From: Lama guanicoe | Taxonomy: Eukaryota | Length of the DNA: 64,000 nucleotides | Direction of reading: 5' to 3' | Assembly (NCBI GenBank): GCA_013239625.1 | Contig: MU054823.1 | Span: 152,305-216,304, forward strand | Part shown: positions 1-47,323 of the stretch, one piece after another | How positions within the stretch are numbered: the first letter of the stretch is position 1 | Layout of the letters: each line of letters opens with the position of its first letter | Position numbers and translations under genes: made by a program | The notes under the pieces: model-generated | Databases searched by the model: none | The model's input: the letters and a program-made list of their open reading frames with translations, nothing else | What the model was told of the DNA's origin: nothing

Positions 1-1030
1 GCCAGGGCTGGGCCTGCCCAGAGGACCCCTGTTCTTTGGCCCCATCTCAGGGGCCTCTCCCTGTTGCCTGTTGCTCAGCTTAACACCGTGCTTGCTGGGG
101 AGTTGATGGAAATGCCTGTGGACGCCTGTCTGCTCCCGTCTGCCTGGGAATGGCATCCTTGTCTCCAGGCCCGCTCCGCAGGTGTCCTGAGCCTGTCCAC
201 TGCAGGCTTCTGAGCGTTTGGCTGCTCTGGTTCAGTTGTCTGGGCTCCTGCCCGTAGACGGAGGGGTTTTCTCTTAGCCTGGTTGGTGCGCTCGCCTTGG
301 TGGCCTTGTACTGAGCCACCTCGTAAGTGTCCCTGTCTCACCGCCCAAGTGGCCCCTGCAGCACCTGTGACAGGAGAGCCCTGTGGAGGCGGCAGTAAGC
401 ACCCCGCATTTCAGCGCGGTTTCGCTACCACGTCCCTGAAGCTTTTGTCTAAATGGGCACGTGCCCAGGGGCCAGCGGGGCCTTGTTTAACCAGCTGCTC
501 TGCTCAGCAGTCAGGACCAAGGGCCCCGTCTCAGCCCGCGGCTCCGTCGTCCCTCAACAGCTGTTGCTGCCGCTTCTACTACTCTGAGGAAGGGTCTCTG
601 CCCTTGGAGGTTGGGGCGTCCAGGGAGTCTGGGCCACAGTGTCATCTCGGGGAGCCCGGGCCTGCGCCTCCCATACCTCTGCTTCAATTTCTTCCTGCTC
701 TGCCGCCAACTAGCTTTCTCTGTGTTCCAGGCGATAAAGCTGAGCTGGGGAGTCCCCAGGGCCTGGGGGTTGGTCTCCCCTACTCCCGCGGTCAGGCAGG
801 CTGAGATGGAGGCTTGGGCCTTTTCTGGAGTCACAGGGCAGGACCCTGACCAGCTCTCCTCCAGTCCTCGTCCACTCCTGGGCCCCTGGGTGTGAGGAGC
901 GGGGGACAGGACGGCAGGCATCTGCTGCACGTGGACTCTGCTCCCGTCGTCACCGCCGCCCTCCAGTGGCGCCTCACGTTGCTGACGGTGCTGTGCTCTC
1001 TGAGTCATGCGTCTCTGCCATCTCTTCCAG

Positions 1031-2136
1031 CGTTCCTGACATGGGCACCGGGGGGCGGCCAGGCCCCCAGCTGTGCTGCAACAGCTGCTGAGCAAGGTGC
1101 TCAGAGCACGGGGCTGATCCCAAGGCGGGCAGCTCTGGAGGAAGGTGGAAGCCGTGGAGAGGCTGGGCTGGGACTGCCACAGGGGCCTCCCCTGGCACTG
1201 GGGGTTCTGGACCCTCGTGGGAATGAGGATGCTGGAGAGGGGCCCAGGGGCTCCCCTTGGGGACCAGCTGTTTACGAGGAAACTGGAGGGCAGAAGGGCC
1301 ACAAGACCAGCACATCCAGGTCAGAGGTCACCCTGGACACACGCTCTGCGGCCTGTGGGAGAGGCCCCTGGAAAAGACGGCCTTATCAGTGTGGCTCCTG
1401 TGACAGGAGCTTCCAGTGCTACTCGGACATGGTGAAGCACCGGAGCATTCACTCCGGGGAGAAGCCCTACGAGTGCAGCGAGTGCGGGAAGGCCTTCATC
1501 CACAGCTCGCACGTACTCCGGCACCAGCGCACCCACAGCGGAGAGAAGCCTTATGTTTGTCCAGAGTGTGGGAAGGCCTTCAGCCAGAGCTTCAACCTCA
1601 TCAGACACCAGAGAACGCACACCGGAGAGAGGCCGTATGAGTGCGCCGAGTGCGGCCGGTCCTTCAGCCAGAGGTCGGACGCGGCGAAGCACCGGAGGAT
1701 CCACACCGGGGAGAGGCTGTATGCGTGCAGCGAGTGCGGGAAGGCCTTCATCCACAGCTCAAACGTGGTCCGGCACCAGCGGACTCACCACGGGGAGAAC
1801 CCCTACGCGTGTCCAGAGTGTGGGAAGGCCTTCAGCCAGAGCTCCAACCTCATCCAGCACCAGCGGGTCCACACTGGCGAGAAGCCCTACTCCTGCCAGG
1901 AGTGCGGGCGCGCCTTCAGCCGCAGCTCCTTCCTCAGTGAGCACCGGCGCATCCACACCGGGGAGAAGCCCTACGAGTGCGGGGAGTGTGGCCGCGCCTT
2001 CAGGGCCCTGTCAGGCTTCTTCCGGCACCAGAGGATCCACACCGGGGAGAAGCCTTTCCGCTGTGCCGAGTGCGGCAGGGCCTTCCGCCTGAGCTTCCAC
2101 CTCATCCAGCACCAGCGGGTCCACGGCCCAGAGTGA
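1031..2136 (+). CDS. ZNF696: Zinc finger protein 696, last coding exon (9 C2H2 fingers); upstream exon(s) probably outside the window
   Basis: Acceptor tctcttccag ends at 1030. The ORF has 9 tandem CxxC-x12-HxxxH fingers with TGEKP-type linkers and ends in [19 protein letters not shown]. Motifs SDAAKH, HHGENPY and RALSGFFRH match human ZNF696 as recalled, and the position next to TOP1MT fits synteny. Confidence 0.92.
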
Positions 2137-7121: not shown

Positions 7122-7127
7122 TTTAAT
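7122..7127 (-). terminator. Probable TOP1MT polyadenylation signal ATTAAA
   Basis: ATTAAA on the minus strand about 40 nt past the TOP1MT stop at 7169. Confidence 0.55.
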
Positions 7128-7168
7128 AGTGAAAAAAAAAAAGTTCCAACGAGGCAGAGAGATGCTTG

Positions 7169-7268
7169 TTAGAATTCAAAGTCTTCATCTGCCATGTCGA
7201 GAGCCCAGGTGAACTTCTCCCTCTGCGTCTTGTTGTAAATCTCCACGGGCACCCCAAACCTCTTACAC
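7169..7268 (-). pseudogene. TOP1MT: TOP1MT exon 14
   Basis: [32 protein letters not shown]; the expected acceptor reads caa instead of cag; one codon lost (EKI->EI). Confidence 0.9.
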
Positions 7269-7681
7269 TTGCCGGGAGGGGCAGGAAGGCGGCCAGGACA
7301 TGGCCAAAAGCCCAGGGGCATCAGGGAGGGGGCAGCTTCCCCCAGCGCAGCCCTGTGTCCTCCCAGTGGGGCTCGCAGGGAACACTGACTGGGCACACAG
7401 GCAGCCCAGCTACCGCACCCCCAGGGGGTGGGCAGCTTGGGAACAGCTCTGGGTCACCACACCACACTGGGCTGTGGTCCCCGCCCCACCCCAGCCCTCC
7501 TCTTACCCCAGGCTCTCAGGCAGAGAGGACTGACAACACAGGGCTTGGCCTCAGATGTGCCAGCCAGTTGTGTTCCTGTCACGGGAGAACCTGCACTGCA
7601 CAGGACTGGACTGGGGCCACCTGGGGAGTCCAGACCCCTCCTCAAGACTGCGAGCAGGCAGGGTGACCTGGGTCCACGCAC

Positions 7682-7830
7682 CAGGCAATGCTGATCTGAG
7701 GGTCTAGGCAGTTGAGCTTGGACGTGCCCAGGGCCACCTACTGCTCTCCTTCTTGTCCGTGGCCTGTGTGCTCAGCCTCAGGAGCCGCTCCTCCAGTCTC
7801 TCCAGCAGCCGCCCCCTCTTCTCCAGGAAG
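7682..7830 (-). pseudogene. TOP1MT: TOP1MT exon 13 (catalytic Tyr exon)
   Basis: FLEKRGRLLERLEERLLRLSTQATDKKES/-1/*VALGTSKLNCLDPQISIAW; 149 nt; TAG at 7738-7740; the catalytic Tyr codon is TGC (7708-7710). Confidence 0.92.
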
Positions 7831-8229
7831 CTAGGGAAGGAGAGGTGCTGGCACCACAGCTCTCCCTCATCCCCTAGGCAAGTTCCAGGAGGCCAGGACA
7901 CAGGGAAGGCTGCCCTCAGCATGAAGGGACCGTCCAGCCTTGACGTCACAGGAAATCACGTATGAAACACACACAGGCTACAACCAAAGAGAGCAGAGCA
8001 CAGAACCAAGCAGAAGAGCTGCCCTGTGTCAGAAAGATGCTCAGCCCTCATTCCTGATGTTTCACAGAAAAGCCGGTTTATTAAAGCCAGACCCTCCCTC
8101 CACCCTCCACGCTGGATACAGTGCCCCGCCCACAGACCCCAAGCCCACATGCACATGAACTGCAACCTTGGTCCTTCTCCCGGGAACTCGGGCTCCAAAT
8201 CCACCTGGACACAGGTAGAAGGCCTGGAG

Positions 8230-9430
8230 CAGCCCCAGCGGACATGCAGCAGAGCGCAGGGGACTCACGCGTCCTGACTTCAGCTTAGCGGAATCGAGAC
8301 CAGCGTGAGGACTGACAGACCAACAGAACAGAGCCCGGGAATAAACCAAAACATCTACCATCAGCTCACTTTTCACGGGGCCAGGACCATTCGATGCCCA
8401 AAGGATGGTCCTTTCAGCAAATGATGCTGGGAACACTGGCTGGCCACACACAAACGGACACATTCAGGCCCTTACCTTACACCATGTACAAAAACTGGCT
8501 CAAAAGGGATCAGCTTCCTAAATGCAAAAGTTGAAATGATAAAACTCTTACGAGAAGACCTAAGAATGTATCTTTACAATGTTGGGTCAGACAAGGCAGC
8601 AACAACAAAAACTAGACTCATCGAGAGTTTTACGTTTTGCGCTTGGAGGGATACCACCAAGGAAGTAAAAGGACAACACGGGACGGGAAAACGCACCTTC
8701 AGATCAGCATCTGAAAAGGTATTTGTGTCTGGGATGAATAATGGGCTCTTACAACTCAGCAGTAAAAAGACAGGGACACAAGTGAAAAACAGACAAGGGG
8801 CGGAACAGACATCTCTCCAGAGAAGACCCACAAGTGGCCAGCAAGCACAGGTCACCAGCCATCGGGGAAGCGCAAACTCCGCCCGCACTGAGACGCTGCC
8901 TCACACGCCGCCTCACACCAGCAGGGCTATAGCCAGAGAGGGAAAGGGGAAGGGAGACATGGGAACCTCTGTGCACGGCCGGCGAGACGAGCGCTGGTAC
9001 ACCCACCGCGGAGAACAGCCTGGCGCTACCAAGTGACCCAACAATTCCACTCCTTGAAAACCACAAAAATCACCGAAGCCACAAAAGTCATGCACAAAGA
9101 AAGTCACCAAAAACCCCCAAAACCCCACAAAAGTCACAAAGGGGAAACACCAGATGTCCAGATACAGGGACAGTAAAAGGTGGTCTAGCCACACGACAGG
9201 ATAGCTGACAGTCAAAAGGAGTGACGTCTGGACAGGCTGCATTACGGGGACCTTGGTGGCATCACACTAACAAAAGCCGAAGTCCACAGACGGTGGGTCC
9301 CATCTGGGTCAGGCACTGCAGGTGTTCAAGGCTGAGGGCACGGGAGGTCTGAGTCAGGACACAGGGTTTGTCGCAGGTGATGGAGAGGCTCTAAAATCGG
9401 GAGCAGCCATGGCCGCACAGCCACTCGCCC
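8230..9430 (+). mobile_element. Degenerate LINE-1 ORF2 3' part and 3'UTR in TOP1MT intron 12
   Basis: L1 phrases: cctttcagcaaatgatgctgggaacactgg, ccttaccttacaccatgtacaaaaa, gacccaacaattccactcctt. Confidence 0.75.
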
Positions 9431-9666
9431 ACAGGCTGTAAACAGTGTCCACCAGCCCTGGAGCTCGGCCACCAGGCACAGGCTGACCACCCGGTGAGGC
9501 CCACATTTGTCTCGTGCACTTCACAGTGCTCTGCTCTTTGACTCAAATGAGGCGGTCTGTATTTTTTTCAATCACAAAATATGACTAAGAAAACCAGAGA
9601 ACTGGTGAAGGAAAAGCAGGTTCACAGCCACCCCAACTGGGACGGGCTGGGCTCTCCGACACTCGC

Positions 9667-9760
9667 CTCCTGGATCTGCTGTCCCCGCTGGCTCTGTGGT
9701 CAGCCCTTGCCTTCTCCAGCTCTGCCTTGGCCTCCCCACCTGCTGCTTCTTTGCCTCGAT
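9667..9760 (-). pseudogene. TOP1MT: TOP1MT exon 12
   Basis: IEAKKQQV/-1/EAKAELEKARADHRASGDSRSR; 94 nt; donor is GC (gcgagt). Confidence 0.88.
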
Positions 9761-10097
9761 CTGCAGAGGGGGCCCAGTCAGGGCTGCTCCTGCCCCACCC
9801 AGTCAGGGTGCTGAGTGCTAGCCCTGATCGGCCACTCCTTGGCCAGGGGACAGGGTGAGGCCAAGAGGTCCCAGACATACCCCCTGCTCCACTGACCTCC
9901 TTCCTGGACTAGAGGCCTTTGCTCACCAGAAAGGCACATCCTTACCCACTCCCTCCCCTCAGGGAAACCGCCTCCCAGCCAGCACCTGGCCTGGGCAGCC
10001 CTGATTGCTCAAGCACCTCTGAGGGCCATGTAGCCCCAGCGAGGCTGGCACCCAGAGGCCCTCCCACTGTGAGCAGCTGGCCAGGCCAACTGTGCAC

Positions 10098-10223
10098 CTT
10101 CAACCAGAGTCTGCACTGACTTCTTGAAGGTCTTGGGAGTTGCCCGCTGATGGTTGCAGAGAACAGCAACAGCCCGGTTCGCACGGTTATAAGACAGGAT
10201 CTTATGGGCTACGCTGTCTTCAG
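10098..10223 (-). pseudogene. TOP1MT: TOP1MT exon 11
   Basis: [40 protein letters not shown]/-2/K; 126 nt; catalytic His (CNHQ) retained. Confidence 0.9.
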
Positions 10224-10781
10224 CTGAGAAGCAGGGGTGTGTTGGGAGCAGCAGGCACTGGGCAAGTCACTGCGGGAGCCCCGCCCCGTGTCAGGAGGGG
10301 CCTCGGTCAGTACCCGGTCCAAGGAGTCCACACAGGGCAGAGCTGGGGCCTCCCCAGAACCCCCCCACCCTGGCACGAGCTCAGTAGGACAGCGTCAAGG
10401 GGCCCAGAGGTCGGGTGAGCTTGGGCAGCTGGGCAGTGGTGAGGAGGGTCCCGCACATGAGGAGGGACACGCAGAGCTGGGTTGGTGCTTCACAGATGAC
10501 TGCAGAGGAGAAGACACAGCCTGGGCAGGGGCCTGACTGACTGCGGGGCTGACGCGTGGAGAAGGGGGTGCTCAGCAGGGGTGGCCGAGCAAGGAGCAGC
10601 AAGCCCTGGGGGAAGGCTCAGCCTCGGGTCCTGAGGGCCCCTCCCCCTTCCTGCTGGGCTCAAACCTGGACCGTCCCTTTTGGGCCAGGCAAGCCCCACT
10701 CTGCCCCTAGACACCGGCCACAATACATCCTCCGACCAACCAAGCAGCCAGGCACCAGCCCCAGGCTGGGGACCCACTCAC

Positions 10782-10897
10782 CTCTGGTCAGTGCCCGCAG
10801 CTGCCCCTGCAAGGTTGACGCTGGCATTGTAGGTCCGGAACACCTTGGCCGTCAGGCCGTCCATCAGGTCCTGCAGGTGCTTGTTCAGGCTGGCAGT
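10782..10897 (-). pseudogene. TOP1MT: TOP1MT exon 10
   Basis: [27 protein letters not shown]/+1/[11 protein letters not shown]; acceptor position reads cgt (no AG); 1-nt insertion at about 10815. Confidence 0.9.
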
Positions 10898-11154
10898 ACG
10901 CACACGCCGGGAAGATGGGTCTCAAAACGTGTTCCTTTAGGGCAGCTCCACAACACTTCCCAGCACCCTGACCACGCCACCAGAGGGGCTTTAGCCGGTG
11001 GTCAGACAGATGGCCCTCAGCCTTCCTATTGCAGACTCAACGCTCACACTCGCCCCAGCTCATCTGACTGACCATTCTGGACACAAATGGGCTGAGCTGC
11101 GCTGGCAGTCCCTGGGTCACCCCATCAGCACTGCCCTGAGGCCCCGGGGCTTAC

Positions 11155-11223
11155 AGTCAGTCTGTCGAAGAGCTCATCCCCAGGCTCCTTGTTCTCCACG
11201 AACAGCTGCAGATTCTTGTACAC
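11155..11223 (-). pseudogene. TOP1MT: TOP1MT exon 9 (intact)
   Basis: cag|VYKNLQLFVENKEPGDELFDRLT|gtaagc; 69 nt. Confidence 0.92.
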
Positions 11224-12429
11224 CTGTGGCAGGAAGAGGAACCCCTTAGAAAGACATGACTGGCCCACAGGCAGAAGCAGCCTCTCCTGGGCGCCCAAGG
11301 GGCGTCTGCATTCGGAGGACAGGGATCAGGCTCCTCCCAGGGAGGTGGTCTGCACACCTCGGAGTGTCCAGGCTGTGGAGAAGAGGCTGCACCCTCTCCC
11401 CCTGCACACCTGCCCCTTCCTCCAGGTGACCCCAAGTCTGCAGTCAGACCTGCCTGACACTGCAGGGCCTCAGAGGACCCTCCCCTGACCTGCACAGGCC
11501 AGTCCTACTGCGAGAAGGCTCTCGGCGGCCATGCTGCACATCCACTTTCAAGTCAGTCCTTTGAGGGGAGCACAAACGTCCTCCCGGCTCCCCTCTGCCT
11601 GGGCCCCTCTTGGCAGCCAGCTCCGCATGTGCCCCACCAGGCTGGACACCAAGTGCCCAGCTACAGAGTGACCAGCATAGCTCCTTCAGCACCATGTCCC
11701 CTAACTTTCCTGAACCGAGTGGCTTAGTGCCTTAGGAAAGTGCTCCACCATCCTCTGCCCAGTGAGGACAGCGAGGAGGCCCGGCCACCCCAGGGAGGGG
11801 CCTCACCTGCTCACAGCCCTGTGGTTCCCTGACCCCAGCCTCCAGCCTCCAGCCTCCAGCCTGAGACATAAGTGCCCATTTGTGAGGCTCCCAGTCTGAG
11901 CAGCCAAAACTCAGACACCTGACAAGGCTCCTCTGCTACTCAACTCCTCCCGCCCCGCAGCAGGCCCAGCGGCTCCCTACTCATTCACACCCTTGATCAG
12001 ATTTCAGAGGCCCAGGCACGCTGGGCACTCTGGGGCGCAGGGTGCTCCCGCCTGAGTGGATGTTTCTGTCACCTTCGACAGTCTCCCTAAACTTCCCGTT
12101 CTGTGTTCCGGAGGCCATGTCTGCCTATGAAGTGCATGTAAGTTGCCAGCAGTCAATACTGGGCCCACCCTCACTGCTGTGACATGGTGCCCACCCAGAC
12201 TGGGGCTGGGAGACTGTCATTCTGGGGCTCACCACTCCAGAAGGGGGGTGTTCCCCAAATTCTGATTTCCCTTCAGACCCCTCTGCAAACCAACGGGGGC
12301 CAGGTAGGTGTCAGCACAGCAGCCAGCCAGCAGGCTTGACCCCGAACCTCACCATTCAGAGACCCGGGACACCGCCAGAGTTACCACTGCGAGCCGCGTG
12401 CCCAGTGGGCCAGAAGACCCTTTCCAGGT

Positions 12430-12795
12430 GTGCTGGGGTGAAGAGTGTCCCCCTAAATTCACATCTTTCCCAGAACCTCAGAAGGTGACTTTTGGAAATA
12501 GTCTTTGCAGATGCCATTAACTAAGACCAGGTCGCCGTTGGGTAGGGTGGGACCTAATCCAATACAACTGAATCCTTGTGAGAGACAGACACACGGAGGA
12601 AGATGGCCAGTGGGGAGCAGACACCGTGGTGATGCAGCCTCAAGCCCAGAGACTGAGGGTCACCACCACCTCCAGACACCTGGAAGGGTTCTCCCCAGAA
12701 CTGCAGAGGGCGCACGGCCCTGTCACCTCCTGCTCTCGGAATCCAGGCCTCCAGAAGGACATGTTGTGGCCCAATTACAGCAGCCACCCTAACCC
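12430..12795 (+). mobile_element. MaLR solo LTR (MLT1-like)
   Basis: tgtcccc..aaattcac..cagaacctcagaaggtgacttttggaaatagtctttgcagatg...agggtgggacctaatccaat...ttacagcagcc, typical MLT1 LTR phrases. Confidence 0.75.
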
Positions 12796-13018
12796 ACCAG
12801 GAGAGCAGTGACGCTGGTGCCTAGGAAGGCGGGTTCAGTCCAGCCTAGGGGCGTGACTCCCCATGCACACTGACTCACCCCAGCAAGGCCTCCCTCCCTG
12901 CCACACAGGATGGGACAGACAGTGAGCTGGGACAGACAGGCTACAAGTCTCTGCCCACAGCTACCACGGGAAGACTACAGAAACCACTACCACCTTCACC
13001 ACCCACACCGGCACTGAC

Positions 13019-13204
13019 AGGCTTCCCTACTGGCACTCAGTTGTGGTAGTGGATCGAGTCCTTCCCCAGGAAGTCGAACATCACAACGTATGGGCAGCTG
13101 TCAGCCTCCAGGTGCAGCTGGACGTGCTCCACGCGGAGGGAGCAGCAGCCCACCGCGTCCGCCATCTCGCCCTCCTCCTTCTCGTGCCTGGCTCACAGCG
13201 GCAG
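13019..13204 (-). pseudogene. TOP1MT: TOP1MT exon 8 (catalytic Arg/Lys exon)
   Basis: [60 protein letters not shown]; 186 nt; TGA at 13193-13195 (the LALR catalytic Arg) and at 13037-13039; acceptor reads cgg. Confidence 0.93.
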
Positions 13205-13425
13205 CCGGGGGGCAGGGCCGGGCACACACGGCAGGTGCACAGGCAGGCAAGTACCACACGCACACATGCATATGGATACATACACACATGTAACTGGCGT
13301 GCACACACAGGCCCTTTCACCTGCCCAAGGCTCTGGCTGGGGACACAGAAGCCCCGCCGTCCCCTCCGCTGCCCTGCCTGCCCAACCAGGTCTGTGCAAC
13401 CGACAGAGCCTCTGGGACCCCACAC

Positions 13426-13567
13426 CTTGTCGATGAAATAAAGGGCCACGGCACGTCTCGCTTTCATCTCGTGAGACTTCCAGTCGGCCCAGTAGTGAGA
13501 ACGGATCTTGCCCACCACCCCTTTCAGGCGCCGAGCCACCTCGTACTTTTCCCAGTCTCTCTCCCTC
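13426..13567 (-). pseudogene. TOP1MT: TOP1MT exon 7
   Basis: [46 protein letters not shown]; 142 nt between tag and gtgtgg (one extra nt at the start, one codon lost). Confidence 0.9.
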
Positions 13568-13869
13568 CTAAGTGAAGAGAACAAGTAGCAAAGAAATGCA
13601 CAGCACTCCTGCCAACAGGGAACTGCCGACCCTCGGCCCAGCCCGCTCTCACCTTCGCGGCCCAGGGCCGGGAGCAGACACCAAACTCAGTGAGGCTTAC
13701 GGTGGATGTAAATGTAATTCCTTGCTTTTAAAGACAAATGGCCACTGGACACAATATGATTTCAAAATTGGCTTGTTCACGCCTACGATCTGAGAGAACC
13801 CCTGCCAAAGCGCCCGGCCTGAGCTGAGGGAGGGGCTCCCGGGGGCAGCACAGGCCGAGCTGGGCTCAC

Positions 13870-13994
13870 CTTCAGCTTGGAGCTGGGTTTCAGCATGATG
13901 TACTTGGTGGAGTTCTGGACGTTCTCCGTCCACGCCGCCAGCCACGTGACCGTGCGGTTGGTGACCTGCCGGGGGCTTGGGTATTCTTGAGTCC
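13870..13994 (-). pseudogene. TOP1MT: TOP1MT exon 6
   Basis: DSRIPKPPAGHQ/-20/TVTWLAAWTENVQNSTKYIMLKPSSKLK; 125 nt; the WKEVRSDN segment is deleted. Confidence 0.9.
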
Positions 13995-14650
13995 CTGCAG
14001 CAGGAAAGTGACCCAAACCCAGCAGTTCAAGACCCTGCTCCCTGAAACGTGAGCCAGGCGCCCCCACCTCCCATGCTGTGCTGGCCTAGGCACAGGGGCC
14101 CAGCGTTGGCCAGGGTCAGCCCGAGTCTGTTCGAGCACTGCCTCCTCGCCTCTTAGCTCCTGCTTCGCAGGCATGACAGGCCTGTTCAGGGCGGCCCCCA
14201 TGTGTGGAGGCCAGGGTGGCCATCCCCAGGGCCACATGCATCTCAGGAGTCTCAGCAGCTCCTGGGACACCTCCGCTGACCCCGCCAGGCAGCATCCACG
14301 CAGCAGAGGGACAGAAGCTCCTGCTGGAGCACAGCCCGCCAGCACAAGCGGGAACTCTCTTCCCACACGTTCCAGACACTCGCGTGTTACTAGATTATCC
14401 CAGGAACTTGAAATGCGGAAAACTGTCGAGAGCATGCAGACACTCTCCTGCTGGGGTAAAACTCCAGCCGGGGGCAGAGTGGTGAGGGCTGGTTCAGCTA
14501 ACAGCACACAGGCTGCAGCACAGGCGTCCACCCTGGGGAGAGGCGCCCTCCCGCCCAGCCCTCAGAGCCCTGCGTAACAGCAACACACTCGGCAACAGGC
14601 CCCCCGCCCCCGGTGAGGAGCAGGGTTGCACGCGAGTGGCCTGCACACAC

Positions 14651-14832
14651 CCACTGCAGCTGATGGTCACGCCCTCCAGCATGACCCTCCTCTTCAGCAT
14701 CCCCATCTCAGGGTGGTTGCCACGGCCCCGGAACAGCCCTGGGGGCTCAGTCTTAAAACTGCCCATCTTCTCTCGGTGCCTAAAATACAGTAGCCAAACT
14801 CTGGCTGAAGCTCCTCAGCCTCTTCTTTGAGC
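14651..14832 (-). pseudogene. TOP1MT: TOP1MT exon 5
   Basis: [17 protein letters not shown]/-4/[42 protein letters not shown]; the acceptor AG and first bases are missing. Confidence 0.9.
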
Positions 14833-15264
14833 CACAGATGTTAGTGGTAGGGGGACAGGGTGGGCCTGATGCCCCAGTGTGCTGGGTTAGCCGGGCTCGG
14901 GAGCCCCGTGAGGACCAGCAGGCCAAGGGCTGGGCAGGTGCCCAGTCCCTGTGGTCTGGGCACTTACACCACGGAGAGTGAACTGATCCTCCCACTGTAT
15001 CACACGGCAGGTTCCCTTCCCACGTGCCCTGGGTAGACCCAGCATTTTTAAACACATTGAGATGCACGTAACTTGGAAGTGTCCGAGACCACGATGGGGC
15101 CAGATCAGAGGCCCCTCCACCACATCTCCGCGGCTCAACCAGAAGAATCCCACAGGGATGGCGATCCTGACAGGATGGGGTCTTCGGCTCCGGCCCCACG
15201 CACACCAGCAGCCTCCCACTGCGGCCCAGGAGCCCAGGCCAGACTGGGCCCTGCACAGCCTGAC

Positions 15265-15387
15265 CTGCTTCTCCTCCCTGGACAGGGCTTTCCGGGCGGC
15301 GGTCCTGTCCGCAAAGTACCTGTGGATCTCAGTGAAGTCACAGTTGTCCAGGCGCTGGATTACTTTCCTCTCTTATGCCGTCATCTC
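15265..15387 (-). pseudogene. TOP1MT: TOP1MT exon 4
   Basis: [40 protein letters not shown]; 123 nt; first premature stop TAA at 15373-15375. Confidence 0.93.
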
Positions 15388-16186
15388 CTGCACCAGAGCC
15401 AGACATGCCTCTCAGCATCTATTGTGGGCATTGGGGACCTCCCCACCACAGCCAGGCCCTCCACGGGACACGGTGACATCGCAGAAGCCAGAGGAACAGA
15501 ACTGAGTGCACCAAGTCCGTCCAGTCCAGCAGCCTTTGTAGTTGTCTCCCAGAGGATGGCCTTTCCAGCAGGTGGCCAGGTCCCAGTGGCCTTCTGAGTT
15601 GGGCCACACAGCCACATCTGAAGACCAGCCCCACTGGCTGCCGTGGGGCCTGCAGACCATGTCCAGCACCGAGGGGTCCTCAGTCACTCTTCAGGAAGAT
15701 GACCTGCCACTCCCCACACAGTAGGAGCGCACACGACAGCCACACTGCAGAATTGCTGGGTGGTCCCCAACCCAGCCATACGTGTAGCCCATGACCCCAC
15801 CATCCTGCCCTCAGTCCCTGCAGAGGGGTGGGCACACAGCCACATGACCCCTTGTCAGAACCCTAGTGCCCGTCAGCTGAGAAGTGGACACGTGCTGTGC
15901 TGGCGTCCTGCTGAGAGCAGCCCTGAAGGGGCCTGGGGCATGCCTTCTCCAGCCAAGTCCACAGGTATAGACAAGGTGGGTGCAGATGCGCACATAACCC
16001 AGTTTTTTTAAATGAGAAAAAACTAGTTAACTATAACCTTATCTTCAAAGAGCTTCCCAACAAATGTTTGTTTCCTGGGAGCCTAAAATTACCCCTCCCG
16101 GCCCCCTATGGCAGGCAGGCGACTGCCAGCCCCAGGCCAAGCTGTGAAATGGGGCCACTGAGAAACTGAGGCCATGTAGCACTCAC

Positions 16187-16308
16187 CTTCCGCCAGCCAC
16201 TGAAGAAGTTGTTCTGGAAAACTTCCTTTGCTGTGCACTCGTGATCCAACATTTTCCCATAAAACGTGGTGACCTCCTCTGCTGCTAAACTCAACTTGAC
16301 AGGCTTTC
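16187..16308 (-). pseudogene. TOP1MT: TOP1MT exon 3 (frame intact)
   Basis: cag|[41 protein letters not shown]|gtgagt; 122 nt. Confidence 0.93.
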
Positions 16309-17838
16309 CTGGAGGCATCAGGAGACACATGGTTCAGGGAGCTGGCACGGTTTGCCCTCCAGCACACAGAATTCTGCTCTTTAAATCACAGTTACACATG
16401 CTGCCAAGAGCAAGGAATTCTGGCTTTAATCAAGAAGCACGTTCTCAATTTAAGAAAACGACTACACTTGCGAACACTTGCTACACAGGTGTTCACCCCA
16501 GATTATGGGCTGGGCCCCGTGGAAAGTGCCAGCGGCCACAACTGCTCACACGTGTCCTGCTTTAACACTGTTTTGCTAGTGTGCTCATGTGGAAGCTTAC
16601 AGCTCAACAACACGTGCAGTTTTAGAACACGCATCACCACATAATTATAGAAGCAGAACAACAGTTAAGGTTTTAAAGCAAAAACGTGTGAACTGTAGGA
16701 GCTGCGCCCTCGTTTGCCCAGCTGCTTTCAACATTTCATTCCAAGGATCGGCGTGTATTAGAGGCGGCTCAACGGAGAGCAGGTGGTCCAGCAAAGCAGG
16801 GTGAAAGCCGATGTGGGTGAGGGGGGTTCACCATGGAGTGCTCTCAACTGCTGTGTTTGAAAATATTCGTAACAAAATGTTGGAAACGTAACTATGCAGT
16901 CGTTTGGTAACAAGGAAAAGGGCATTTGTGATAAAACAGCAGTTCTTCCCAAAACTAGCTTCTCGGGAGAACAGAGAACTGGGGCAGCAGCCAAGGCCCG
17001 AGGGGCTCAGCTCCTGCCCTGTGAGCCCCTCCCCACGCAGGGCCACCCAGGCCGCCCACTCCCCACTCCTGTCCCAGGCCGCGAGCTGCCCTCTGGAGCG
17101 GCGGAGGCAGTGGGGCCTGTGCCTACCAGGCACCCATGCAGCGCAGGGCACCTTCAGAAGCCTTGCTCAAGCACGGACGCAGCAAGTGGGGGGAAACGGG
17201 CCAAACTAGCAGCACAAAACCAAGCAGAAGCTCCTGCCCAAGGGGTGGAGAGGATGAGGGCCGAGGCAGGGCAGTGAGGGCAGGTGATTTGGCACCCACA
17301 GGCCCGCAGTAACCCGCTCAGTTGCTTGTTAGGAAGTGAATGTGGGAGCCCACAGGCAACGTGCTCCAATACCCAGGGGCCCAGAGACTCAGGCCCTCAC
17401 CCAGAGGGCCAGTCCCCAAGGCAGGGCCACGGGGGCACAGCAGGAAGGCAAGGGTGGAAGAACCCAGCTGGGTAAGTTGGAGCACACCACCTGGTCCGTC
17501 TTGCGCTGCATGCATCCCCGCCCCCAGCAGCCCTTGGAAACTCCGCACTCCCAGGGTTCTGGGGGGCGCCAGGCTGCAGCTGCTGGAGCACAGAGGCCCC
17601 GTGATCTCTCCAGGAACCTCGGGACTGCAGACTTGGAGGCTGCCTAGCCTGGATCCTGAGCAAAGGTCAACTGTCCCCCAGGTGCACAGGCCTCCCAGAC
17701 TTCCGTGGGCCAGCTCCCCCAGGGCGCCGAGGTGGGAGAGCCTCCGAGGGAGCAGGAGGCCCAGGGGACCACTAGTCACGGGGTGCAGAGGCGGCTCCTT
17801 GGCCCCTGGTCCCTCGGGCCTCGGGGAGCTGTTCTCAC

Positions 17839-17951
17839 CGCTGTAGTAGAAGCGAACTCCAGCAGGAAGGGGCTCGGACGGGGACGCAAAGCACGGTCCT
17901 CTGTGCTCCAACTGCATCCACTTCATGCCGCCTGGTCTATTCTCTTCCCAC
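17839..17951 (-). pseudogene. TOP1MT: TOP1MT exon 2 (frame intact, phase-2 start)
   Basis: cctccag|G-WEENRPGGMKWMQLEHRGPCFASPSEPLPAGVRFYYSG|gtgaga; 113 nt; conserved GPYFAPPYEPLP is degraded to GPCFASPSEPLP. Confidence 0.93.
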
Positions 17952-20549
17952 CTGGAGGACCCACAAGAAGGCTTCCTCTCTCACTCCGCACCTGCGCACC
18001 GCAGGCCTTCGAGCACGAGTCCCTAGTGGAGGCCTGTGACTCCACCTCCTAGCTAAGCCAGTGAGAAGCAGGCGGGGTCATCCACGAGGGGCGGGGCGCC
18101 AGGACTAACCTGCCCAAGCTCAAACCACACCTCCTGGGCAGGGAGTCTCCCCAAGCTGGGTGCCTTCAGGGCTGCTCCAGAGCCCCCGCCTGTCTCTAGA
18201 GGACACCCCCTACCCAGCCCTTCCAGGAGCCAGAGACGTGTGCCCTGTGACCATTTTTTTCCTAAACAAAGGCCTAGCTGCAGCCCTACCTCCCAGGAGC
18301 CAGGCTGAATGGGAGGTGGGCAGAGCTGCCTATGAGGAGAGGGGTGGCCAGGACCACAGGGGCCCGGGTCAGCCCACAGAGGACAGGGACGGAGCAGACA
18401 TAGCAGCAGAGAGGAGGCCCAGGGGTGCGAGTCTTGGGGACCCTAGGGAGGGATTTGGTATTGGTTGTAGGTCTTGTGTGGCCCCACATCCCCATGAGCC
18501 TGGCCAAGATCCCCGCCCCTACCTGTCCCCAGAGCTTCCTGAGGCAGCACAGGAAGGCCTGACTCCCCGTGACCCTGTCACCTACCCCCTGGCCCCAGAG
18601 CTCTCCCAAGGGGCTGCCCTGGACCAGTGCTTGCTGGGTCCTGGGACACAGATGACCATCAAGCCCCTTCCCAAGGAACTGAGGCGAGTGAGGAGGTGAG
18701 TTCAGACAGACGCTTGTCTTGGCAAAGATGGAAGGGTAGAGGGGTGGCTGGCAGTGGGGCGGGCAGGGTTTCTGCCGGTTAAGTTCTACTGGTAGAGCCA
18801 GGAGAAAAGCAACTCCCAGCAGAAGGAAAAGCAGGTGCAGAGGCCCTGGGACGGCAAAGGCCTCGGCCTGGCAGAGCTGCCAGCACGGGGAGCCTGCTGG
18901 GCCTTCCCCAACCGCCAGGCACTGCTCTCGGCATCGGCACCATGAGGCAGGAGACCTGCCGGGCTCAGGCTGCCTGGGCAAGGTGGGCCCCGGAGACTCA
19001 CTTCAGCCTGTGCTACTCAGGTGAGTACCCTAGAGCTACAGGAAGCCCCCCAGGGCTTGAGGAAGGAAGGGACAAGCGAGACAGACATCTATGAGAAGAC
19101 CCTGCCAGCTGTTTCTGCAAGGAGGGTTGGGGCCACACAGGAACAGGAGCAGAGGGGCTGCATTTAGGTGGAGCCCGTGACTGGGGGGAAGTCAAGTAGT
19201 TTAAGAATGTTCTGGGGTGGAATCAAGGGGCTCTGGTGATAAGGCGGGAGCACCCCGCAGCAGAGGCGGAGGGGGCAGGAGGGCCTGTGCCCAACGTGGA
19301 GCAGGCACCATGCATCTCACTGGTTTTAGGACGTCATCCTGCTGAACTGTTCCAGCAGACCTAGGGTAGTGCTAACGGTAGGGTGAGTGATTAATAACAA
19401 GAACGTAAACTACAACAGTACTTTCTTTCTGAATCAAGGGAAGACACATCCTGTTTTAGATGTCAGAAATGTGACAAAACACAGATCTCAGGTCTGACTG
19501 GCGGTCAGTAGGTGCTGGGCAGCGGGCTGAGCTTCTCACCAAAACCTCTGGCAGATGCTACCATCATCCCTACTACAGACAAGGAGCTGAGGTCAAGGTC
19601 TAGCAACTCACCGGCCACTAGCTGACCTGGGCCTGCCGTGGCGCTCAGCAGAGCCCTGCATGTTGCAGGGAGCCCCGCCCCTCAGCATCAGCCCCGCCCC
19701 TTCATGATCTGCCCCCAGCCCTCACCGCAGGGCCGGGGGGTCCAGAAGGCCCCAACCCTGCGCACTTGGCCTGTTGTCCCTCCACAGATCGCGATACCAA
19801 GCACTGCCATCAGAGGCAAGCTGGCTTTCTAAGGGAGACCTTGCTCCAAACTACTTGCCCAACCTCGTGCAACTGCAGCTCACAGCTCTTTATGGATCGT
19901 GTCTACCAAGGATGCCCCAGTTCTATGTGTGGGCCCGACCCCCCGTTCCCAGAATGCCATCCTACCCACCCTGCTGGTGCTGTCTCCTCACCCCAAGCAG
20001 GGCCAGAGCCCCCAGAGGCAGACAAGACCCTTCCGCTGTGTGACCATGCCCAGTTTCTGGCTCCTGGCTGTAAAGTGGATGTACTGACAGCACTTGGGTC
20101 ACAGGATGGTGGCCCTTCAGGCCACAGTGTCACCATCCCGTAGGCACTAAGTTAATGACATTAGAGCTCCAACAGGAGCTCCTGAGCACAGCCCTGTGGG
20201 GGTGTGAGCCCACCCAGGTCTTTGGAAATGTTAACAACTCATGCACAAGAGAACCCCACCTCCCTCCAGCTATCCCACACCCCCTCACAACTCACCCCCG
20301 ACATGACCACATCCCCCACGAAACAGCTTGGAGCACTGTGGGCAGAAGCCAGCCTCAGCTCAGAGCACAATGGCCACTAAGGGGCGACTGGACACGTGGT
20401 ACGTGCCCATGATGAGAATGAAGGAGCTGCAACTCCTGGAAAGGAGTAACTGAGAATCCCGCACAGATGAAACAGCCAGCGTCAGACCACAGACATACCA
20501 AGTTCAGACCAAACACTGCAGGACTCACGCTAGCACAGCTCCCTAAGCA

Positions 20550-21020
20550 ACAAAGGGAAAAACCGCGGGGAAGAAACCCCCGCGTGGGGGCCCGGGGGAG
20601 CTGGGGTGAGACGGGGCGGGGCTCGCACGCCCTGGGTCAGGAAACGGCAAGTGCTGCGTCTGCGGTCTCAGGCCACACCCCGAGAGCAAGGCCAGCGCTC
20701 CCGGTGCGCTCCCATCCCGCCCGGCGCCCTCGGCCACCTTACCCAGCTGGGCTGACGACCCTCCCCCGGGGCTGGGGGCTTTGGGGGCGTCGGCGCTCAT
20801 CCGCTCTCCCGCCTCAGGAGCCCGGGGAGCCAGAACCTGCCCCCCACCAGCAAAGCGCCCCGCCCCCAGCCCTCACCGCAGGGCCAGCCCCGCCCCGAAG
20901 GCCCCGCCCCCGAAGGCCCCACGTGGATGCGGACGCGGCTGGCCGCGAGGAGAGCCGGTCGGGGCCGCCGGGCAGGGGCTCCTCGGTGGGGGCGTCTTCC
21001 AGGCGGCACACGGAGGCACA
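20550..21020. promoter_or_regulatory. CpG island / GC-box promoter, probable proximal (mitochondrial isoform) TOP1MT promoter
   Basis: High CpG density and several ccccgcccc GC boxes, about 2.8 kb upstream of exon 2. Confidence 0.65.
20743..20853 (-). pseudogene. TOP1MT: Probable decayed TOP1MT exon 1 (mitochondrial targeting peptide)
   Basis: Strong donor TGG|gtaagg at 20742. The phase-2 frame ends ERRRPQSPQPRGRVVSPAG but has an upstream TGA; LLVGGRFWLPGLLRR (presequence-like) lies in another frame starting at TTG. The only ATG (20800) is out of phase with exon 2. Confidence 0.45.
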
Positions 21021-24425: not shown

Positions 24426-24645
24426 TACTGGTTCTCGACAGCACCTGGTGAAACCTACATTTCAGAGCTGCTCCTGCACTGCAGCGTTCAGGAGTTCCCC
24501 ACCAGCCCTTCCCAACAGGCCCACAGCCAGCATCCCAGGCCTGAAAGAGGCCAGAGACCCCTGCAGGCAGAGATGCACACGGGGCAGGGGCGGGGCCAAG
24601 GCTGCAGGGTGGTGCCGGTTGTGGGCGGGGCCGCAACGGACATAC

Positions 24646-37165: not shown

Positions 37166-37920
37166 ACAATGGACTGCCAACCACCACACCGCTCTGAGGC
37201 CAGGCCGGAGCCCGGGTCCCCACCCAGAGAGAGGAAAACGGACCTCAAGCGCTGCACGGGCGCTCGCTCTAGCAAAACCGTTAAGCCCATCGCGAACGTT
37301 TTCGGACTCGTCCCGCAGAGGCCCAGCCGCCAGGGAGGATGAAACCCGCGCTGCCCTGGGCCCTGCGCTACGCCTTGTTTTTCACTTTTCTGCCGGCCGG
37401 CGGTTGCCAGGGGCGATCGCATTACCCCCACGGGACTCCGCGGGCACGGCGGGCGGGGCCTGTCTGCGGAGCCACCTCCCCCACGCTCTGGTTGGTTGAG
37501 GCTGCTGTCCGTCGGAGCCGCCGCCGCCGCCGATTGGGCAGCGGAAAGTTTCTCACGTTCGGTCCCCAGCACCCCGCCCCTCCCCTCCGGCCCTCTGGGT
37601 TGCCGCCACCGGGAGAGGGCGGTGCGGGATCCTGCGCGTCGGGAGAGCCTGCGCTGGCGTCGGCTTCCAGGCGGGTGCAGCCCGGGCAGGAGGCAGGAAT
37701 GGTTCCCGAGGAGAAGCTGAATGGTCCCGGCACCGGCGAGGAGAGAGCCCGGCTGCAGGCGGCCGGCAGCATCCGCAAGGTGGGCGCCCCCGAGGGCTGG
37801 GGGCACCGGGAGAAGGGCTCACTCCTGTCGCCATCTGCCGCAGGCGCGCACGAGGCTGCGGAGCCGGTGTTGGCTTCTCCCGTTCAAGCGCGCCGCTAGA
37901 CTCTGGGGCGGATCCCCGCA
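37150..37920. promoter_or_regulatory. RHPN1 CpG island promoter
   Basis: CpG-rich, with GC boxes, an inverted CCAAT (gattgg, about 37532) and a (GCC)n run; overlaps exon 1. Confidence 0.8.
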
Positions 37921-40900
37921 TCTTACCCCTAGAGGCAAACTGGGCTTCCCTCTGGGGAAACTGAGCCCGGCTGCCTGTCTGGACTGAGCTCCTTTCTCTC
38001 CCTTGGGGGGACCCATCCTGTACCGACCAGGAATGGGTGGGAGCGCAAATCCGGCTCGTGGTTTTCTCCGACTCTCTGAGACCCCTTTCTCTGGCAGGTG
38101 ATCGGCTCTGGTCAGTGACAGTTCGTGGCCCTCGTGTTTGTTCCTGGCCCCCGACATTCCTCCTCTCCTAGCTTTTCCTTCTCTCTTCCAGGCCTCAGGT
38201 TTGCACTGGGCACCCAGCTCTGTATTTCATGAAACTTTTAGCAACGGGTGGCTGAAACCTACTGGGTACAGGACATGGCTGGAGGACTTCCCAGCTGGAC
38301 AGTTTTGTCTATCCTCACTTCCCTGCACCTCTGCCTCCTTCTGAAGTCCCTGGCCCTGCGCACTGCGGACTGTGGATCATTTCCAGGAGCGCTGGGGAAG
38401 CTGGGAGTGAGAGAGGTGGGGACCTCGGAAGGAGGATCACTCAGGCTACTCCACTCTGTGGCCCAGAGCCCAGTTGTCCCCTGGGAATCAGCACGAGGCT
38501 GCCCCAGCGTTTTCAGTCCTGTGCCACCAAGCAGAGGTGGCACCTGCACCCACAAGGGTGTGGAACCGGCGCTGCTGACTAACTTGCTGTTTGTTCCCAG
38601 ACCTGTGCTGGCATAGTGGTCACCACACTTTGCCAGTTTGGGCCGCCATCCATGCCATTTCCTCCTGGGTTTCTTGAGGGGACCCGCTAGACCCTTGCCT
38701 GTCAGGGATGCAGCAGTGAGGGTGCTTGGGTGTCACTTCTCTGTTCTCCATCAAGGTGGGGGTTGTGGCACACGCGGGTAGATCCCTTTACCACCCAGCA
38801 CTGCAAACTGGGCTGCAGTCGCACCTCCCTCCCAGGCCCCAGGTCCTACAGCCAGCTGGCCTCCTGGAGGGAGCCTGAGGGTTGCAAGGCCATGAGGGGT
38901 GCTGGCTACAGAGCTCAGAGTGGATCCTGGCTCAGAACCTGCCATCTCCCACCTCCAACACATCTCTCTAGGAGCACTTGACTTTGGAGACCAAACGAAC
39001 TGTGTTGATGAGGACAGCCCTGCTGAGCTGGCTGCCCCTGCCCAGGCAGACAGTCATGCTGCTCACCCAGAACCCTTAGAACCTGCTTCTCTGCAGTCGA
39101 ACCATTGGAGGGAGAAGGATGTAGCTTCAGCTGTGGCCTTCCCTCCCTTCCCTCCCAGGATTCTCAGGCCTCCCGGAGGGAAGACAGCCCATGTCCTCTG
39201 CTCCTTCCCTCCTGTGCAGAGCGGGTGTGGGAGGCACCATGGAGAAGAGGCGCAAGCCAGTGGGAATACAGACACTCAACCAGCAGGGCAGGGAGAGGAG
39301 GGCCATGTGTTGTCTTGTTCCCTCCTGGTGCTTCCCCAACACCAGCACCCCGTCCCATCTGCAGAGGAGGGCCCACCCAGGACCCCACAGTGGGACGTCC
39401 TCCAAGTTGACTGCTCCTTCTCTCATTGCTCAGTGGGAACAAGTCCCCTCTCCCTAGTTACCTCAGGACCACTCGGAAGCCTTCTGTCCTTCAAGTCCCA
39501 GAAGAATGCCTCCTCCTACAGGAAGTCCTCCCTAACTGATCTCTCCTGAGAATGTTGGAGTCTGGAGGAGATGCTGGGCTGTAATCCAAGGTGGCCACGT
39601 GCCTTGTGTGTGCAAGGGTGTGAGGCCTTCTTCTGGGTGCCCCCTGTGCAGGGTTGGGACAAGCTAGAGCCCCCAGAGGGTCTGAAACTGCTCTATGTGT
39701 GATGATGGGGGGCACACTTCCTCAGGTATGTGGAAGACAGTGGACATTGCAGGGAGGCTGATGTCAGGCCTGCATGAATAAAACCTTTGCCTGTCCCTGC
39801 CATCAAGGCATGGTTCTGGGAGGCACTGTGTCCTCATCCCTGCTCTGGTCAGGGGCTGGGTGACCACAAGAGAACGTTGCCCAGGAAAGTGCATTCTGAG
39901 AAGCCCTTCTCAACTCTTGGGCTGGTGACTGACCCAGATGGGAGGTGTCTAAATGGCCAGCCATGCCAGGTGGTGGCCACAGCTGCATCAGTCCTACTGG
40001 GGCCGTGAAAGCCCCTCCCCTCAGTGGAGGCAGCCCCTCACCACCTCCCCCGCCCCCCCCCCCACCCCACCCCTGTGGCCCAAGCCACTGGTGACTGACC
40101 CAGATGGGAGGTGTCTAAATGGCCAGCCATGCCAGGTGGTGGCCACAGCTGCATCAGTCCTACTGGGGCCGTGAAAGCCCCTCCCCTCAGTGGAGGAAGC
40201 CTCTCACCACCTCCCCCGCCCCCCACCCCACCCCACCCCTGTGGCCAGAGCCCTCAAGTGGTTGCTGCTGCTTCAAGCTGCCTCACAGCTCCCTGCCTGG
40301 GGCCCCAAGACATGGGCGGGATGGTCCCCATGCAGTGCAAAACCCTCACTGAGGTGGGTGGGGCCGACAGGAGGGCCATTGGGAGGCCTGGCCTCCTGCC
40401 CATGAGCCGAGCAACCCTGGGCCTGTGGTTTGGGTACTTGTGGCAAGTAAGCAGCCGGCTGGGACAGAGCACGGCCAGGCTCATTGTGGCCCAGAGGAGC
40501 CCCAGCACCCTGCAGGCAGACCTTCTCCTTGAGCGCCTGGGCAGGAGCTGGGCTAGGGCACCCCCTACACCTAAATGCATGCAGGCCAAGTAATTGTGTG
40601 GGCGGATGGGTCTTGGGGTTACAGAAGGAATTCACGAGGGCAGGAGGACATGTGGTGAGTGATTGGCCATCTCCCGCCAGGGGCTGGGGGGTAGGTTCTG
40701 GGCTGGACTGCTGAGACCCAGAGTCCCAGCTTCTTCCCGGGACCCTGTCCCAGCCACGCCTCTACCCACCACGGCCTTCCGGGACTGGCCTCATGACCTG
40801 TGGCCTCTCTGCAGAGCCGCGACCTCCTGGCAGATTCGCAGGACAGCCGCCTGCAGAGCCGCAGGACCCGGATCCACCAGCAGATCAACAAGGAGCTGAG

Positions 40901-46900: not shown

Positions 46901-47323
46901 GGCAATTCCTGCCCACCCCGCAGTGGCCTCCCCACTCCCGGAGGCCCCAGGCAGACGCTGCTGCAGGAACTCTGACCCCTGGCTTTCACCCACCCCAGCA
47001 TGGCAGACCCACTGGGGGCCCTGCTGCATGGCCGCCTTCACAGGAACCCCCAGAATCCACCGTATACCGACCACCTCATCCCCTCATGCTCGCCAGGCCG
47101 GCCCCAAGCAGGTCAGGCCAGGGGTGCTGACCGGTGCCTGTTTCCATTCCAAACACAGGGGGCCCGCCGGCCAGGCCTAGGAGCGCTTCTCAGGAGCCAG
47201 AAGGAGTGTGGCCGGGAGACACCAGGGCCTGCCCGAGCCAGCCCCAGGCCCCTCCTTGGCTGGAGCCGCAAGGCCAAGAGGGGCAAGACTGGAAGGAGGC
47301 TGTCCCCAGCCCCACAGCCCTGA
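37699..47323 (+). CDS. RHPN1: Rhophilin-1 (HR1/REM-1, BRO1 and PDZ domains), 15 coding exons, 660 aa
   Basis: Exons 37699-37779, 40815-40930, 41961-42089, 42344-42419, 43040-43117, 43542-43666, 43760-43926, 44171-44364, 44784-44940, 45014-45127, 45421-45615, 46067-46143, 46338-46484, 46589-46750, 47159-47323. All are GT-AG and phase-consistent, totalling 1983 nt. Motifs [43 protein letters not shown] and [12 protein letters not shown]. Confidence 0.95.
39922..40251. repeat. 166-bp tandem duplication (2 copies) in RHPN1 intron 1
   Basis: ctggtgactgacccagatggg... starts at 39922 and again at 40088; the copies differ at only a few bases. Confidence 0.95.

Follow-up and report, generated by a model that had tools for sequence, protein, structure and literature searches.

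Vertebrates are distinguished by two type IB topoisomerases, one of which is TOP1MT (PMC10081982). Only two topoisomerases have been found in human mitochondria, and TOP1MT is the sole type IB enzyme among them, a class able to relax positive supercoils (PMC9638942, PMC8455175). Published work further describes the activation of cGAS-STING signalling in TOP1MT-deficient human cells and a link between TOP1MT variants and cardiomyopathy. Here we asked whether the TOP1MT locus in a 64-kb window (the whole stretch of DNA analysed) can still give rise to an active enzyme and, if not, what became of it and in which lineage.

Identity and genomic position of the locus

Across the whole 64-kb window, TOP1MT exons 2 to 14 were mapped in order on the minus strand from 17951 to 7169, spread over 10.8 kb with their introns kept. 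The exon set is flanked by ZNF696 on one side and RHPN1 on the other, which is the ancestral syntenic slot; the gene order reported for cattle, RHPN1, TOP1MT, ZNF696 (PMC13542453), is identical to that of the window. The flanking features are as follows.

892..2136, plus strand: ZNF696 zinc-finger exon, intact, without an indel over 1.1 kb
37700..46972, plus strand: colinear RHPN1 exon pieces that match HR1, BRO1 and PDZ, without stops in the matched stretches

Ten RHPN1 exon pieces were undamaged. The ZNF696 protein is identical to that of Vicugna pacos at 367 of 368 positions and 95% identical to that of Camelus ferus. An earlier note on this DNA had called the lineage probably camelid and the neighbouring ZNF696 and RHPN1 coding sequences free of lesions; both statements hold, and the ZNF696 identity narrows the former to the alpaca/llama lineage.

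Exons were searched singly and not as a joined spliced model, a merged row serving only for column counting. Ten exon pieces matched the Pfam families Topoisom_I_N (PF02919), Topoisom_I (PF01028) and Topo_C_assoc (PF14370) colinearly, the exon 2 piece aligning with positions 1-31 of Topoisom_I_N, and the exon 7 piece matched solved human TOP1 (PDB) with E = 9e-16. The readable exon pieces share 81-84% amino-acid identity with TOP1MT of pig and whale. For the exon 7 piece, identity was 81-83% to pig/whale TOP1MT versus about 65% to human TOP1 (counted from the alignment). On these pairwise identities of the exon 7 piece, which were used in place of a formal tree, the locus is closer to TOP1MT than to nuclear TOP1. 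The colinear Pfam matches, the identity to pig and whale and the synteny thus agree with the earlier identification of the gene as TOP1MT. No second TOP1MT-like copy was found within the 64-kb window, where a single exon set lies between ZNF696 and RHPN1. An exact look-up of four window ORFs in a protein collection found no record, and ten long ORFs between 20 and 54 kb, none with a Pfam match, are spurious G+C-rich ORFs.

Exon structure and lesions

The exons and the upstream CpG island are listed below; expected lengths are derived from the residue counts of minke (P0185 in the analysis) and pig TOP1MT.

20501..21000, minus strand: CpG island, GC 0.74, observed/expected CpG 0.71, about 2.6 kb upstream of exon 2
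17839..17951, minus strand: exon 2, frame intact, AG acceptor and GT donor present
16187..16308, minus strand: exon 3, intact, good splice sites
15265..15387, minus strand: exon 4, 123 nt (correct length), premature TAA at 15375-15373, where pig and whale have Glu
14654..14831, minus strand: exon 5, acceptor GG (14833-14832) and not AG, 4-nt deletion at 14780/14779
13870..13994, minus strand: exon 6, 20-nt deletion at 13959/13958, 125 nt versus 145 nt expected
13426..13567, minus strand: exon 7, +1 at the 5′ end (13567-13561), 142 nt versus 144 nt, one Gln codon (-3) lost in frame at 13456/13455
13019..13204, minus strand: exon 8, 186 nt (correct length), acceptor GG (13206-13205), TGA at 13195-13193 and TGA at 13039-13037
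11155..11223, minus strand: exon 9, 69 nt, intact, good splice sites
10782..10897, minus strand: exon 10, no preceding AG, +1 insertion near 10816-10811, 116 nt versus 115 nt
10098..10223, minus strand: exon 11, 2-nt deletion near 10104-10101, 126 nt versus 128 nt, catalytic His motif kept
9667..9760, minus strand: exon 12 (linker), 1-nt deletion near 9736-9734, 94 nt versus 95 nt
7678..7830, minus strand: exon 13, 1-nt deletion near 7742-7741, 153 nt versus 154 nt, TAG at 7740-7738
7169..7264, minus strand: exon 14, acceptor GT (7266-7265) with the canonical AG lost, one Lys codon (-3) lost in frame at 7241/7240, natural TAA at 7171-7169

The premature stops that had previously been placed at 15373, 13193, 13037 and 7738 read TAA, TGA, TGA and TAG, respectively; the frameshifts attributed to exons 5, 6, 7, 10, 11, 12 and 13 are confirmed by the exon lengths compared with minke and pig; and the AG acceptors described as missing from exons 5, 8, 10 and 14 were found to be GG, GG, absent and GT. 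Several lesions had escaped the earlier note. At the exon 5/intron 5 junction, 3-4 more nucleotides are missing, a further blow to either the donor or the frame, and the exon 12 donor is GC instead of GT (9666-9665). In addition, the catalytic Tyr of the Ser-Lys-Leu-Asn-Tyr motif, present in all 24 reference proteins, is replaced by Cys (TGC at 7710-7708). The TAG of exon 13 shares its frame with the downstream Val-Ala-Leu-Gly-Thr-Ser motif, and an invariant Arg of the same exon has become Gln (7698-7696). A cryptic in-frame AG (7269-7268) lies 3 nt upstream of the lost exon 14 acceptor, and an ATTAAA stands at 7127-7122, beyond the natural TAA of that exon.

Altogether, the locus carries four premature stops and seven or eight frameshifts, it has lost four acceptors and exchanged the catalytic Tyr for Cys, and there are at least eleven breaks in its reading frame. 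It is impossible that so many lesions within about 1.7 kb of coding sequence arose by chance. No uninterrupted frame with usable splice sites was found at the locus. Judged from its sequence, the TOP1MT locus is thoroughly inactivated and an active type IB topoisomerase product would be impossible, because the frame is broken, acceptors are lost and the tyrosine that makes the covalent link is now a cysteine.

Exon 1 of TOP1MT encodes the mitochondrial targeting sequence. A tBLASTn search with the N-termini of 21 TOP1MT proteins revealed no significant match to exon 1 or to TOP1-like N-terminal exons upstream of exon 2; the best match, of the gray-whale N-terminus at 20601-20539, was weak (E = 0.33), and targeting sequences are poorly conserved. 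The CpG island at 20501-21000, in which this match falls, is likely the former promoter and exon 1 region.

Relaxed constraint

At 22 of 199 vertebrate-invariant positions, defined as those constant across 24 vertebrate TOP1MT proteins, the residue is changed at this locus, compared with 0-8 in leave-one-out controls. With horse as the outgroup, 45 lineage-unique changes were counted over 451 sites, versus 18 in pig and 8 in minke. Neither count includes exon 10, and nor do the Pfam and protein searches. Constraint is relaxed beyond the disabling mutations themselves.

Alternative explanations

If the lesions were assembly or sequencing errors, the living animal would have an intact TOP1MT. 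We consider this extremely improbable. The region is indeed G+C-rich (about 60%), and one or two of the 1-nt indels fall in short G runs (exon 12). However, four nonsense substitutions, the replacement of Tyr by Cys, the changes at 22 invariant positions, the 4- and 20-nt deletions and the splice-site substitutions are atypical of assembly error, and the neighbouring exons of ZNF696 and RHPN1 show no damage. Moreover, 14 DNA runs from seven studies and with five organism labels, the probable source sample and 13 others, contained 0.93-0.97 of 602 31-mers sampled from 9500-15400, which supports the lesions indirectly, although the missing 3-7% could cover a few of them. The clean neighbours, the substitutions together with the 4- and 20-nt deletions, and the shared 31-mers thus bear out the earlier argument against sequencing error, in the sense that such error is unlikely.

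Two further possibilities accept that the syntenic coding sequence is damaged. In the one, a functional TOP1MT duplicate or retrocopy elsewhere in the genome would mean that the loss is not unitary. Retrocopies of this family do arise, given that human TOP1 has processed pseudogenes (PMC10081982), but we give this explanation only a small chance: the interval between ZNF696 and RHPN1 contains a single copy, and among the protein matches listed there was no camelid TOP1MT-like protein, whether annotated or derived from a transcript, the best match being 84% identical. In two protein searches, no camelid TOP1MT was among the best 120 matches, and camelid ZNF696 is present in the same database; this absence is consistent with a loss but carries little weight, because TOP1MT of ruminants, carnivores and bats was also absent from the matches listed, even though it is annotated in cattle. 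When metagenomes were scanned for camelid host DNA with the exon 8 piece, the matches were distant TOP1 genes of at most 69% identity, none of which was judged camelid. In the other, which is very unlikely, the locus would retain some function through its transcript or through a short N-terminal peptide encoded by the intact exons 2-3. Exons 2, 3 and 9 are intact and the upstream CpG island persists, but a few intact short exons are what chance would leave, and because the first stop lies only five codons into exon 4, the catalytic core would be missing from any peptide. Transcription of the locus may persist: six RNA-labelled runs contained 24-29% of the 31-mers of 9500-15400, shares that are also consistent with a relative about 4% diverged in which the whole stretch is present as DNA carry-over.

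Discussion

In this work, we found that introns are kept at the ancestral syntenic position, as in an unprocessed pseudogene. Very probably, the window contains the TOP1MT orthologue of a South American camelid of the alpaca/llama lineage, decayed into such a pseudogene, and on the evidence of this one locus alpaca/llama-type animals look like natural knockouts of TOP1MT, an enzyme regarded as vertebrate-wide. The lesion load, together with the excess of amino-acid change, suggests decay over tens of millions of years. The simplest explanation of the lesions is that selection on TOP1MT lapsed in a camelid ancestor, with neutral decay since then for something like 20-50 million years. That TOP1MT was lost before the camel-llama split, and that the whole family Camelidae has lacked a mitochondrial type IB enzyme for tens of millions of years, is a tentative extension to which we give somewhat less than an even chance. 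The sequence shows directly which gene this is, where it lies, its lesions and its relaxed constraint; we infer the fixation and age of the loss, the absence of another copy and the mode of compensation. Our literature search found no prior report of a camelid TOP1MT loss.

After such a loss, other enzymes would have to maintain mtDNA topology. The candidate compensator is TOP3A, since no topoisomerase other than it and TOP1MT has been shown in mammalian mitochondria; nuclear TOP1, if targeted to mitochondria, would be a second possibility. The reliance on TOP2B suggested in the earlier note fits badly with the work of Menger et al. (2022; PMC9638942), in which only TOP1MT and TOP3A were found in human mitochondria and knockout of TOP2B had no effect. 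If the loss is family-wide, the relaxation of positive supercoils in mtDNA would be fully transferable to a different enzyme, for instance TOP3A assisted by helpers, or re-targeted nuclear TOP1. A natural loss in a large, long-lived and metabolically hardy mammal would show that TOP1MT is dispensable over evolutionary time, and the cells and tissues of such a mammal would serve to find the compensating activity.

The camelid case may be one of several unrecognized natural losses in mammals. Ensembl orthologue counts are only 77 for TOP1MT versus 272 for TOP1 (PMC10081982), a difference that several mammalian losses, if true, would help to explain. Given a natural loss of this kind, missing TOP1MT annotations would need to be read with caution and not simply as fast evolution or assembly gaps.

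The functional TOP1MT genes of pig, peccary, minke and other whales have the 13-exon core, its order and its neighbours in common with the camelid locus. However, they have open frames and the full catalytic set, whereas the camelid frame is interrupted by stops and frameshifts, acceptors are lost and the catalytic Tyr has become Cys. The human pseudogenes psi1-hTOP1 and psi2-hTOP1 (PMC10081982) are likewise nonfunctional copies of a gene for a type IB topoisomerase. Those, however, derive from TOP1 mRNA as processed copies that lack introns and occupy new sites, and their parent gene is alive, whereas the camelid locus has introns, occupies the ancestral site and is the parent gene itself.

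Top1mt knockout mice are viable, but their mtDNA is more negatively supercoiled and their mitochondrial function is impaired under stress (PMC8455175). Like the proposed natural knockouts, they are mammals without mitochondrial topoisomerase I. The loss in the mouse is engineered, recent and confined to a laboratory strain, whereas the loss here would be natural, fixed and of long standing, in large and long-lived animals that have had time to evolve compensation. With its synteny, its introns, its many independent inactivating mutations and its relaxed constraint, the camelid locus resembles the lineage-specific unitary pseudogenes of other mammals. Unlike the sensory, dietary or skin genes of that class, however, the gene affected here encodes a core mtDNA-maintenance enzyme that is described as a hallmark of vertebrates.

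Results

With pig and minke whale TOP1MT (P0238 and P0185) as tBLASTn queries, thirteen colinear exon blocks were found, running from 17951 down to 7169, and the minus-strand translation of 7100–18100 contains topoisomerase-I-like peptides in three shifting frames. Ten stop-free exon pieces were colinear with Pfam models, matching positions 1–213 of Topoisom_I_N, 6–209 of Topoisom_I and 20–70 of Topo_C_assoc. The exon 7 piece matched solved human TOP1 structures (E = 9e-16) and is 81–83% identical to pig and whale TOP1MT versus about 65% to human TOP1, the latter being a hand count on the structure alignment. The order and strands of the genes in the window are ZNF696 (+), TOP1MT (−) and RHPN1 (+); on cattle chromosome 14 the order is RHPN1, TOP1MT, ZNF696 (PMC13542453). 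tBLASTn revealed no second set of TOP1MT-like exons within the 64-kb window. The copy in the window is the ancestral TOP1MT locus and not a dispersed copy.

The earlier note had described this locus as a unitary pseudogene with premature stops, frameshifts and lost splice acceptors. These lesions are all present when the sequence is checked base by base and exon lengths are compared with those of whale and pig.

TOP1MT exons and their lesions. Indels were scored from exon lengths against the residue counts of whale and pig TOP1MT, with bases read individually.
17951–17839 (−): exon 2, intact; AG and GT present
16308–16187 (−): exon 3, intact; AG and GT present
15387–15265 (−): exon 4, length correct; TAA at 15375–15373, Glu in relatives
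from 14831 (−): exon 5, GG at the acceptor site; 4 nt deleted at 14780/14779
13994–13870 (−): exon 6, 20 nt deleted at 13959/13958
13567–13426 (−): exon 7, one extra base at the 5′ end; one Gln codon missing
13204–13019 (−): exon 8, length correct; GG for acceptor AG; TGA at 13195–13193 and 13039–13037
11223–11155 (−): exon 9, intact; AG and GT present
10897–10782 (−): exon 10, preceding AG absent; one extra base near 10816–10811
10223–10098 (−): exon 11, 2 nt deleted
9760–9667 (−): exon 12, 1 nt deleted; GC donor
7830–7678 (−): exon 13, 1 nt deleted; TAG at 7740–7738
7264–7169 (−): exon 14, canonical AG lost, in-frame cryptic AG 3 nt upstream; one Lys codon missing

Where exon 5 meets intron 5 (14640–14665, minus strand), one lesion comes on top of those in the earlier list: relative to whale and pig, a further 3–4 nt are lost near 14654. 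This has either removed the GT donor, with the exon ending at 14654, or shortened the exon by 4 nt and left the donor in place, with the end at 14655. Exon 4 (15387–15355, minus strand) contains an AG 33 nt inside, a possible in-frame cryptic acceptor that would bypass its TAA (15375–15373) but is of no consequence because further lesions lie downstream. In exon 13 the catalytic Tyr is replaced by Cys (TGC at 7710–7708) and the invariant Arg four residues downstream of it by Gln. Exon 14 closes with the natural TAA at 7171–7169, followed by ATTAAA.

When the exon pieces, exon 10 excluded, were placed in a 24-protein alignment of vertebrate TOP1MT, the window was changed at 22 of the 199 reference-invariant columns (leave-one-out controls, 0–8), two of the 22 adjoining the exon 5 frameshift and possibly reflecting an alignment effect. 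With horse as the outgroup, lineage-unique changes at 451 sites numbered 45 in the window, 18 in pig and 8 in minke whale.

Among the lesions are substitutions, altered splice sites and deletions of 4 and 20 nt, types that are atypical of homopolymer errors. The neighbouring genes were also said to be free of lesions, and this holds for the exons compared. The zinc-finger exon of ZNF696 (892–2136, plus strand), 5 kb away, agrees without an indel at 367 of 368 residues with the RefSeq protein of Vicugna pacos, and the closest ZNF696 proteins are camelid (Vicugna pacos, 98% overall; Camelus ferus, 95%), which places the window in the alpaca/llama lineage. The plus-strand exon pieces of RHPN1 at about 37.7–47 kb are stop-free and colinear with HR1, BRO1 and PDZ (Pfam); we presumed them to be RHPN1, and Pfam subsequently confirmed the domains. 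The single difference in the ZNF696 exon, Leu in the window and Pro in both Vicugna pacos and Camelus ferus, may be a polymorphism or may separate closely related species of South American camelids.

Of 602 31-mers sampled from 9500–15400, fourteen DNA runs, drawn from seven studies and carrying five coded organism labels, contained 0.93–0.97 (0.97 in the probable source sample). Were every one of the roughly twelve lesions in this region false, about 6% of the 31-mers would be expected to be lost beyond baseline; these shares therefore support most of the lesions rather than each one singly. Near-identical sequence under five labels fits the four South American camelids, which are close relatives, together with their forms. 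Six RNA-labelled runs from four studies (X15–X20, labelled organism F and 'reproductive system metagenome') contained 0.24–0.29 of the 31-mers from the same region, independent of run size. Such a share fits a fixed pseudogene transcript covering the exons plus a few short introns; it also fits the whole stretch in a relative diverged by about 4%, possibly Camelus, and a comparison of camel with llama is expected to give just this share.

Several other features were observed. Long TOP1MT-labelled isoforms exist in birds, reptiles and frogs, some otherwise named (P0014, P0004, P0245, P0400, P0410, P0392), and their Lys/Glu-rich N-terminal region ends in a nuclear-TOP1-like Lys-Trp-Lys-Trp-Trp right before exon 2; these N-termini gave no significant tBLASTn match upstream of exon 2 in the window. 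A strong CpG island (30001–31000; GC 0.72, observed/expected CpG 0.79), to which no gene is assigned, has the TOP1MT upstream region on one side and the first RHPN1 exon, at about 37.7 kb, on the other. The G+C-rich segment at 24.3–25.5 kb, which takes in 24501–25500, holds long overlapping ORFs on both strands, none with a Pfam match, and no tandem repeats were found throughout 17.9–32 kb. Two weak tRNA matches, 26446–26517 (+) at 30.4 bits and 30088–30159 (−) at 31.7 bits, barely exceed the Rfam gathering score and are, at a guess, tRNA-derived SINE heads and not tRNA genes. An assembly gap or masked stretch of 148 N occupies 53458–53605.

Discussion

The exons carry roughly ten indel events, plus four nonsense changes, in approximately 1.65 kb. 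At neutral rates that we assumed for mammals, 1–2 × 10^-9 substitutions per site per year with an indel for about every eight to ten substitutions, this load would equal 25–50 million years of neutral decay. The amino-acid excess over pig would give about 20–40 million years for a functional dN/dS of about 0.2–0.3 (published value, 0.307; PMC10081982), a rough estimate since the whale rate yields no consistent solution. These figures point to a loss before the llama/alpaca radiation and, judging from the estimated age, probably before the split from camels.

A collection of 5.8 billion proteins was searched with degu and minke whale TOP1MT. The best 120 matches included TOP1MT from whales, pigs, peccary, horse, primates, rodents, marsupials, birds and reptiles, none from camelids, and likewise none from ruminants, carnivores, bats or hippo; the window exons were at most 84% identical to the retrieved proteins. 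The absence of a camelid protein is weak evidence because ruminants, carnivores and bats are also missing, although TOP1MT is annotated in cattle (PMC13542453). No report of TOP1MT loss in camelids or any other mammal was found in the literature searched. An evolutionary study failed to find one or both paralogues in some genomes, and explained why Ensembl has 77 orthologues of TOP1MT but 272 of TOP1 by rapid evolution and gaps in assemblies (PMC10081982). Further true losses of TOP1MT may be worth surveying.

Top1mt knockout mice are viable, with more negatively supercoiled mtDNA (PMC8455175). TOP1MT and TOP3A were the only topoisomerases found in human mitochondria, and knockout of TOP2B in human cells had no effect on mtDNA (PMC9638942); an earlier Pommier laboratory paper reported, by its title as cited in PMC8455175, that vertebrate mitochondria contain topoisomerases II-alpha and II-beta. 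Compensation by TOP3A plus some second activity would be likeliest. Dual localisation is known to arise through gene duplication as well as through alternative N-terminal isoforms (PMC11974929), which would make a nuclear TOP1 isoform with mitochondrial targeting an attractive candidate for the second activity.
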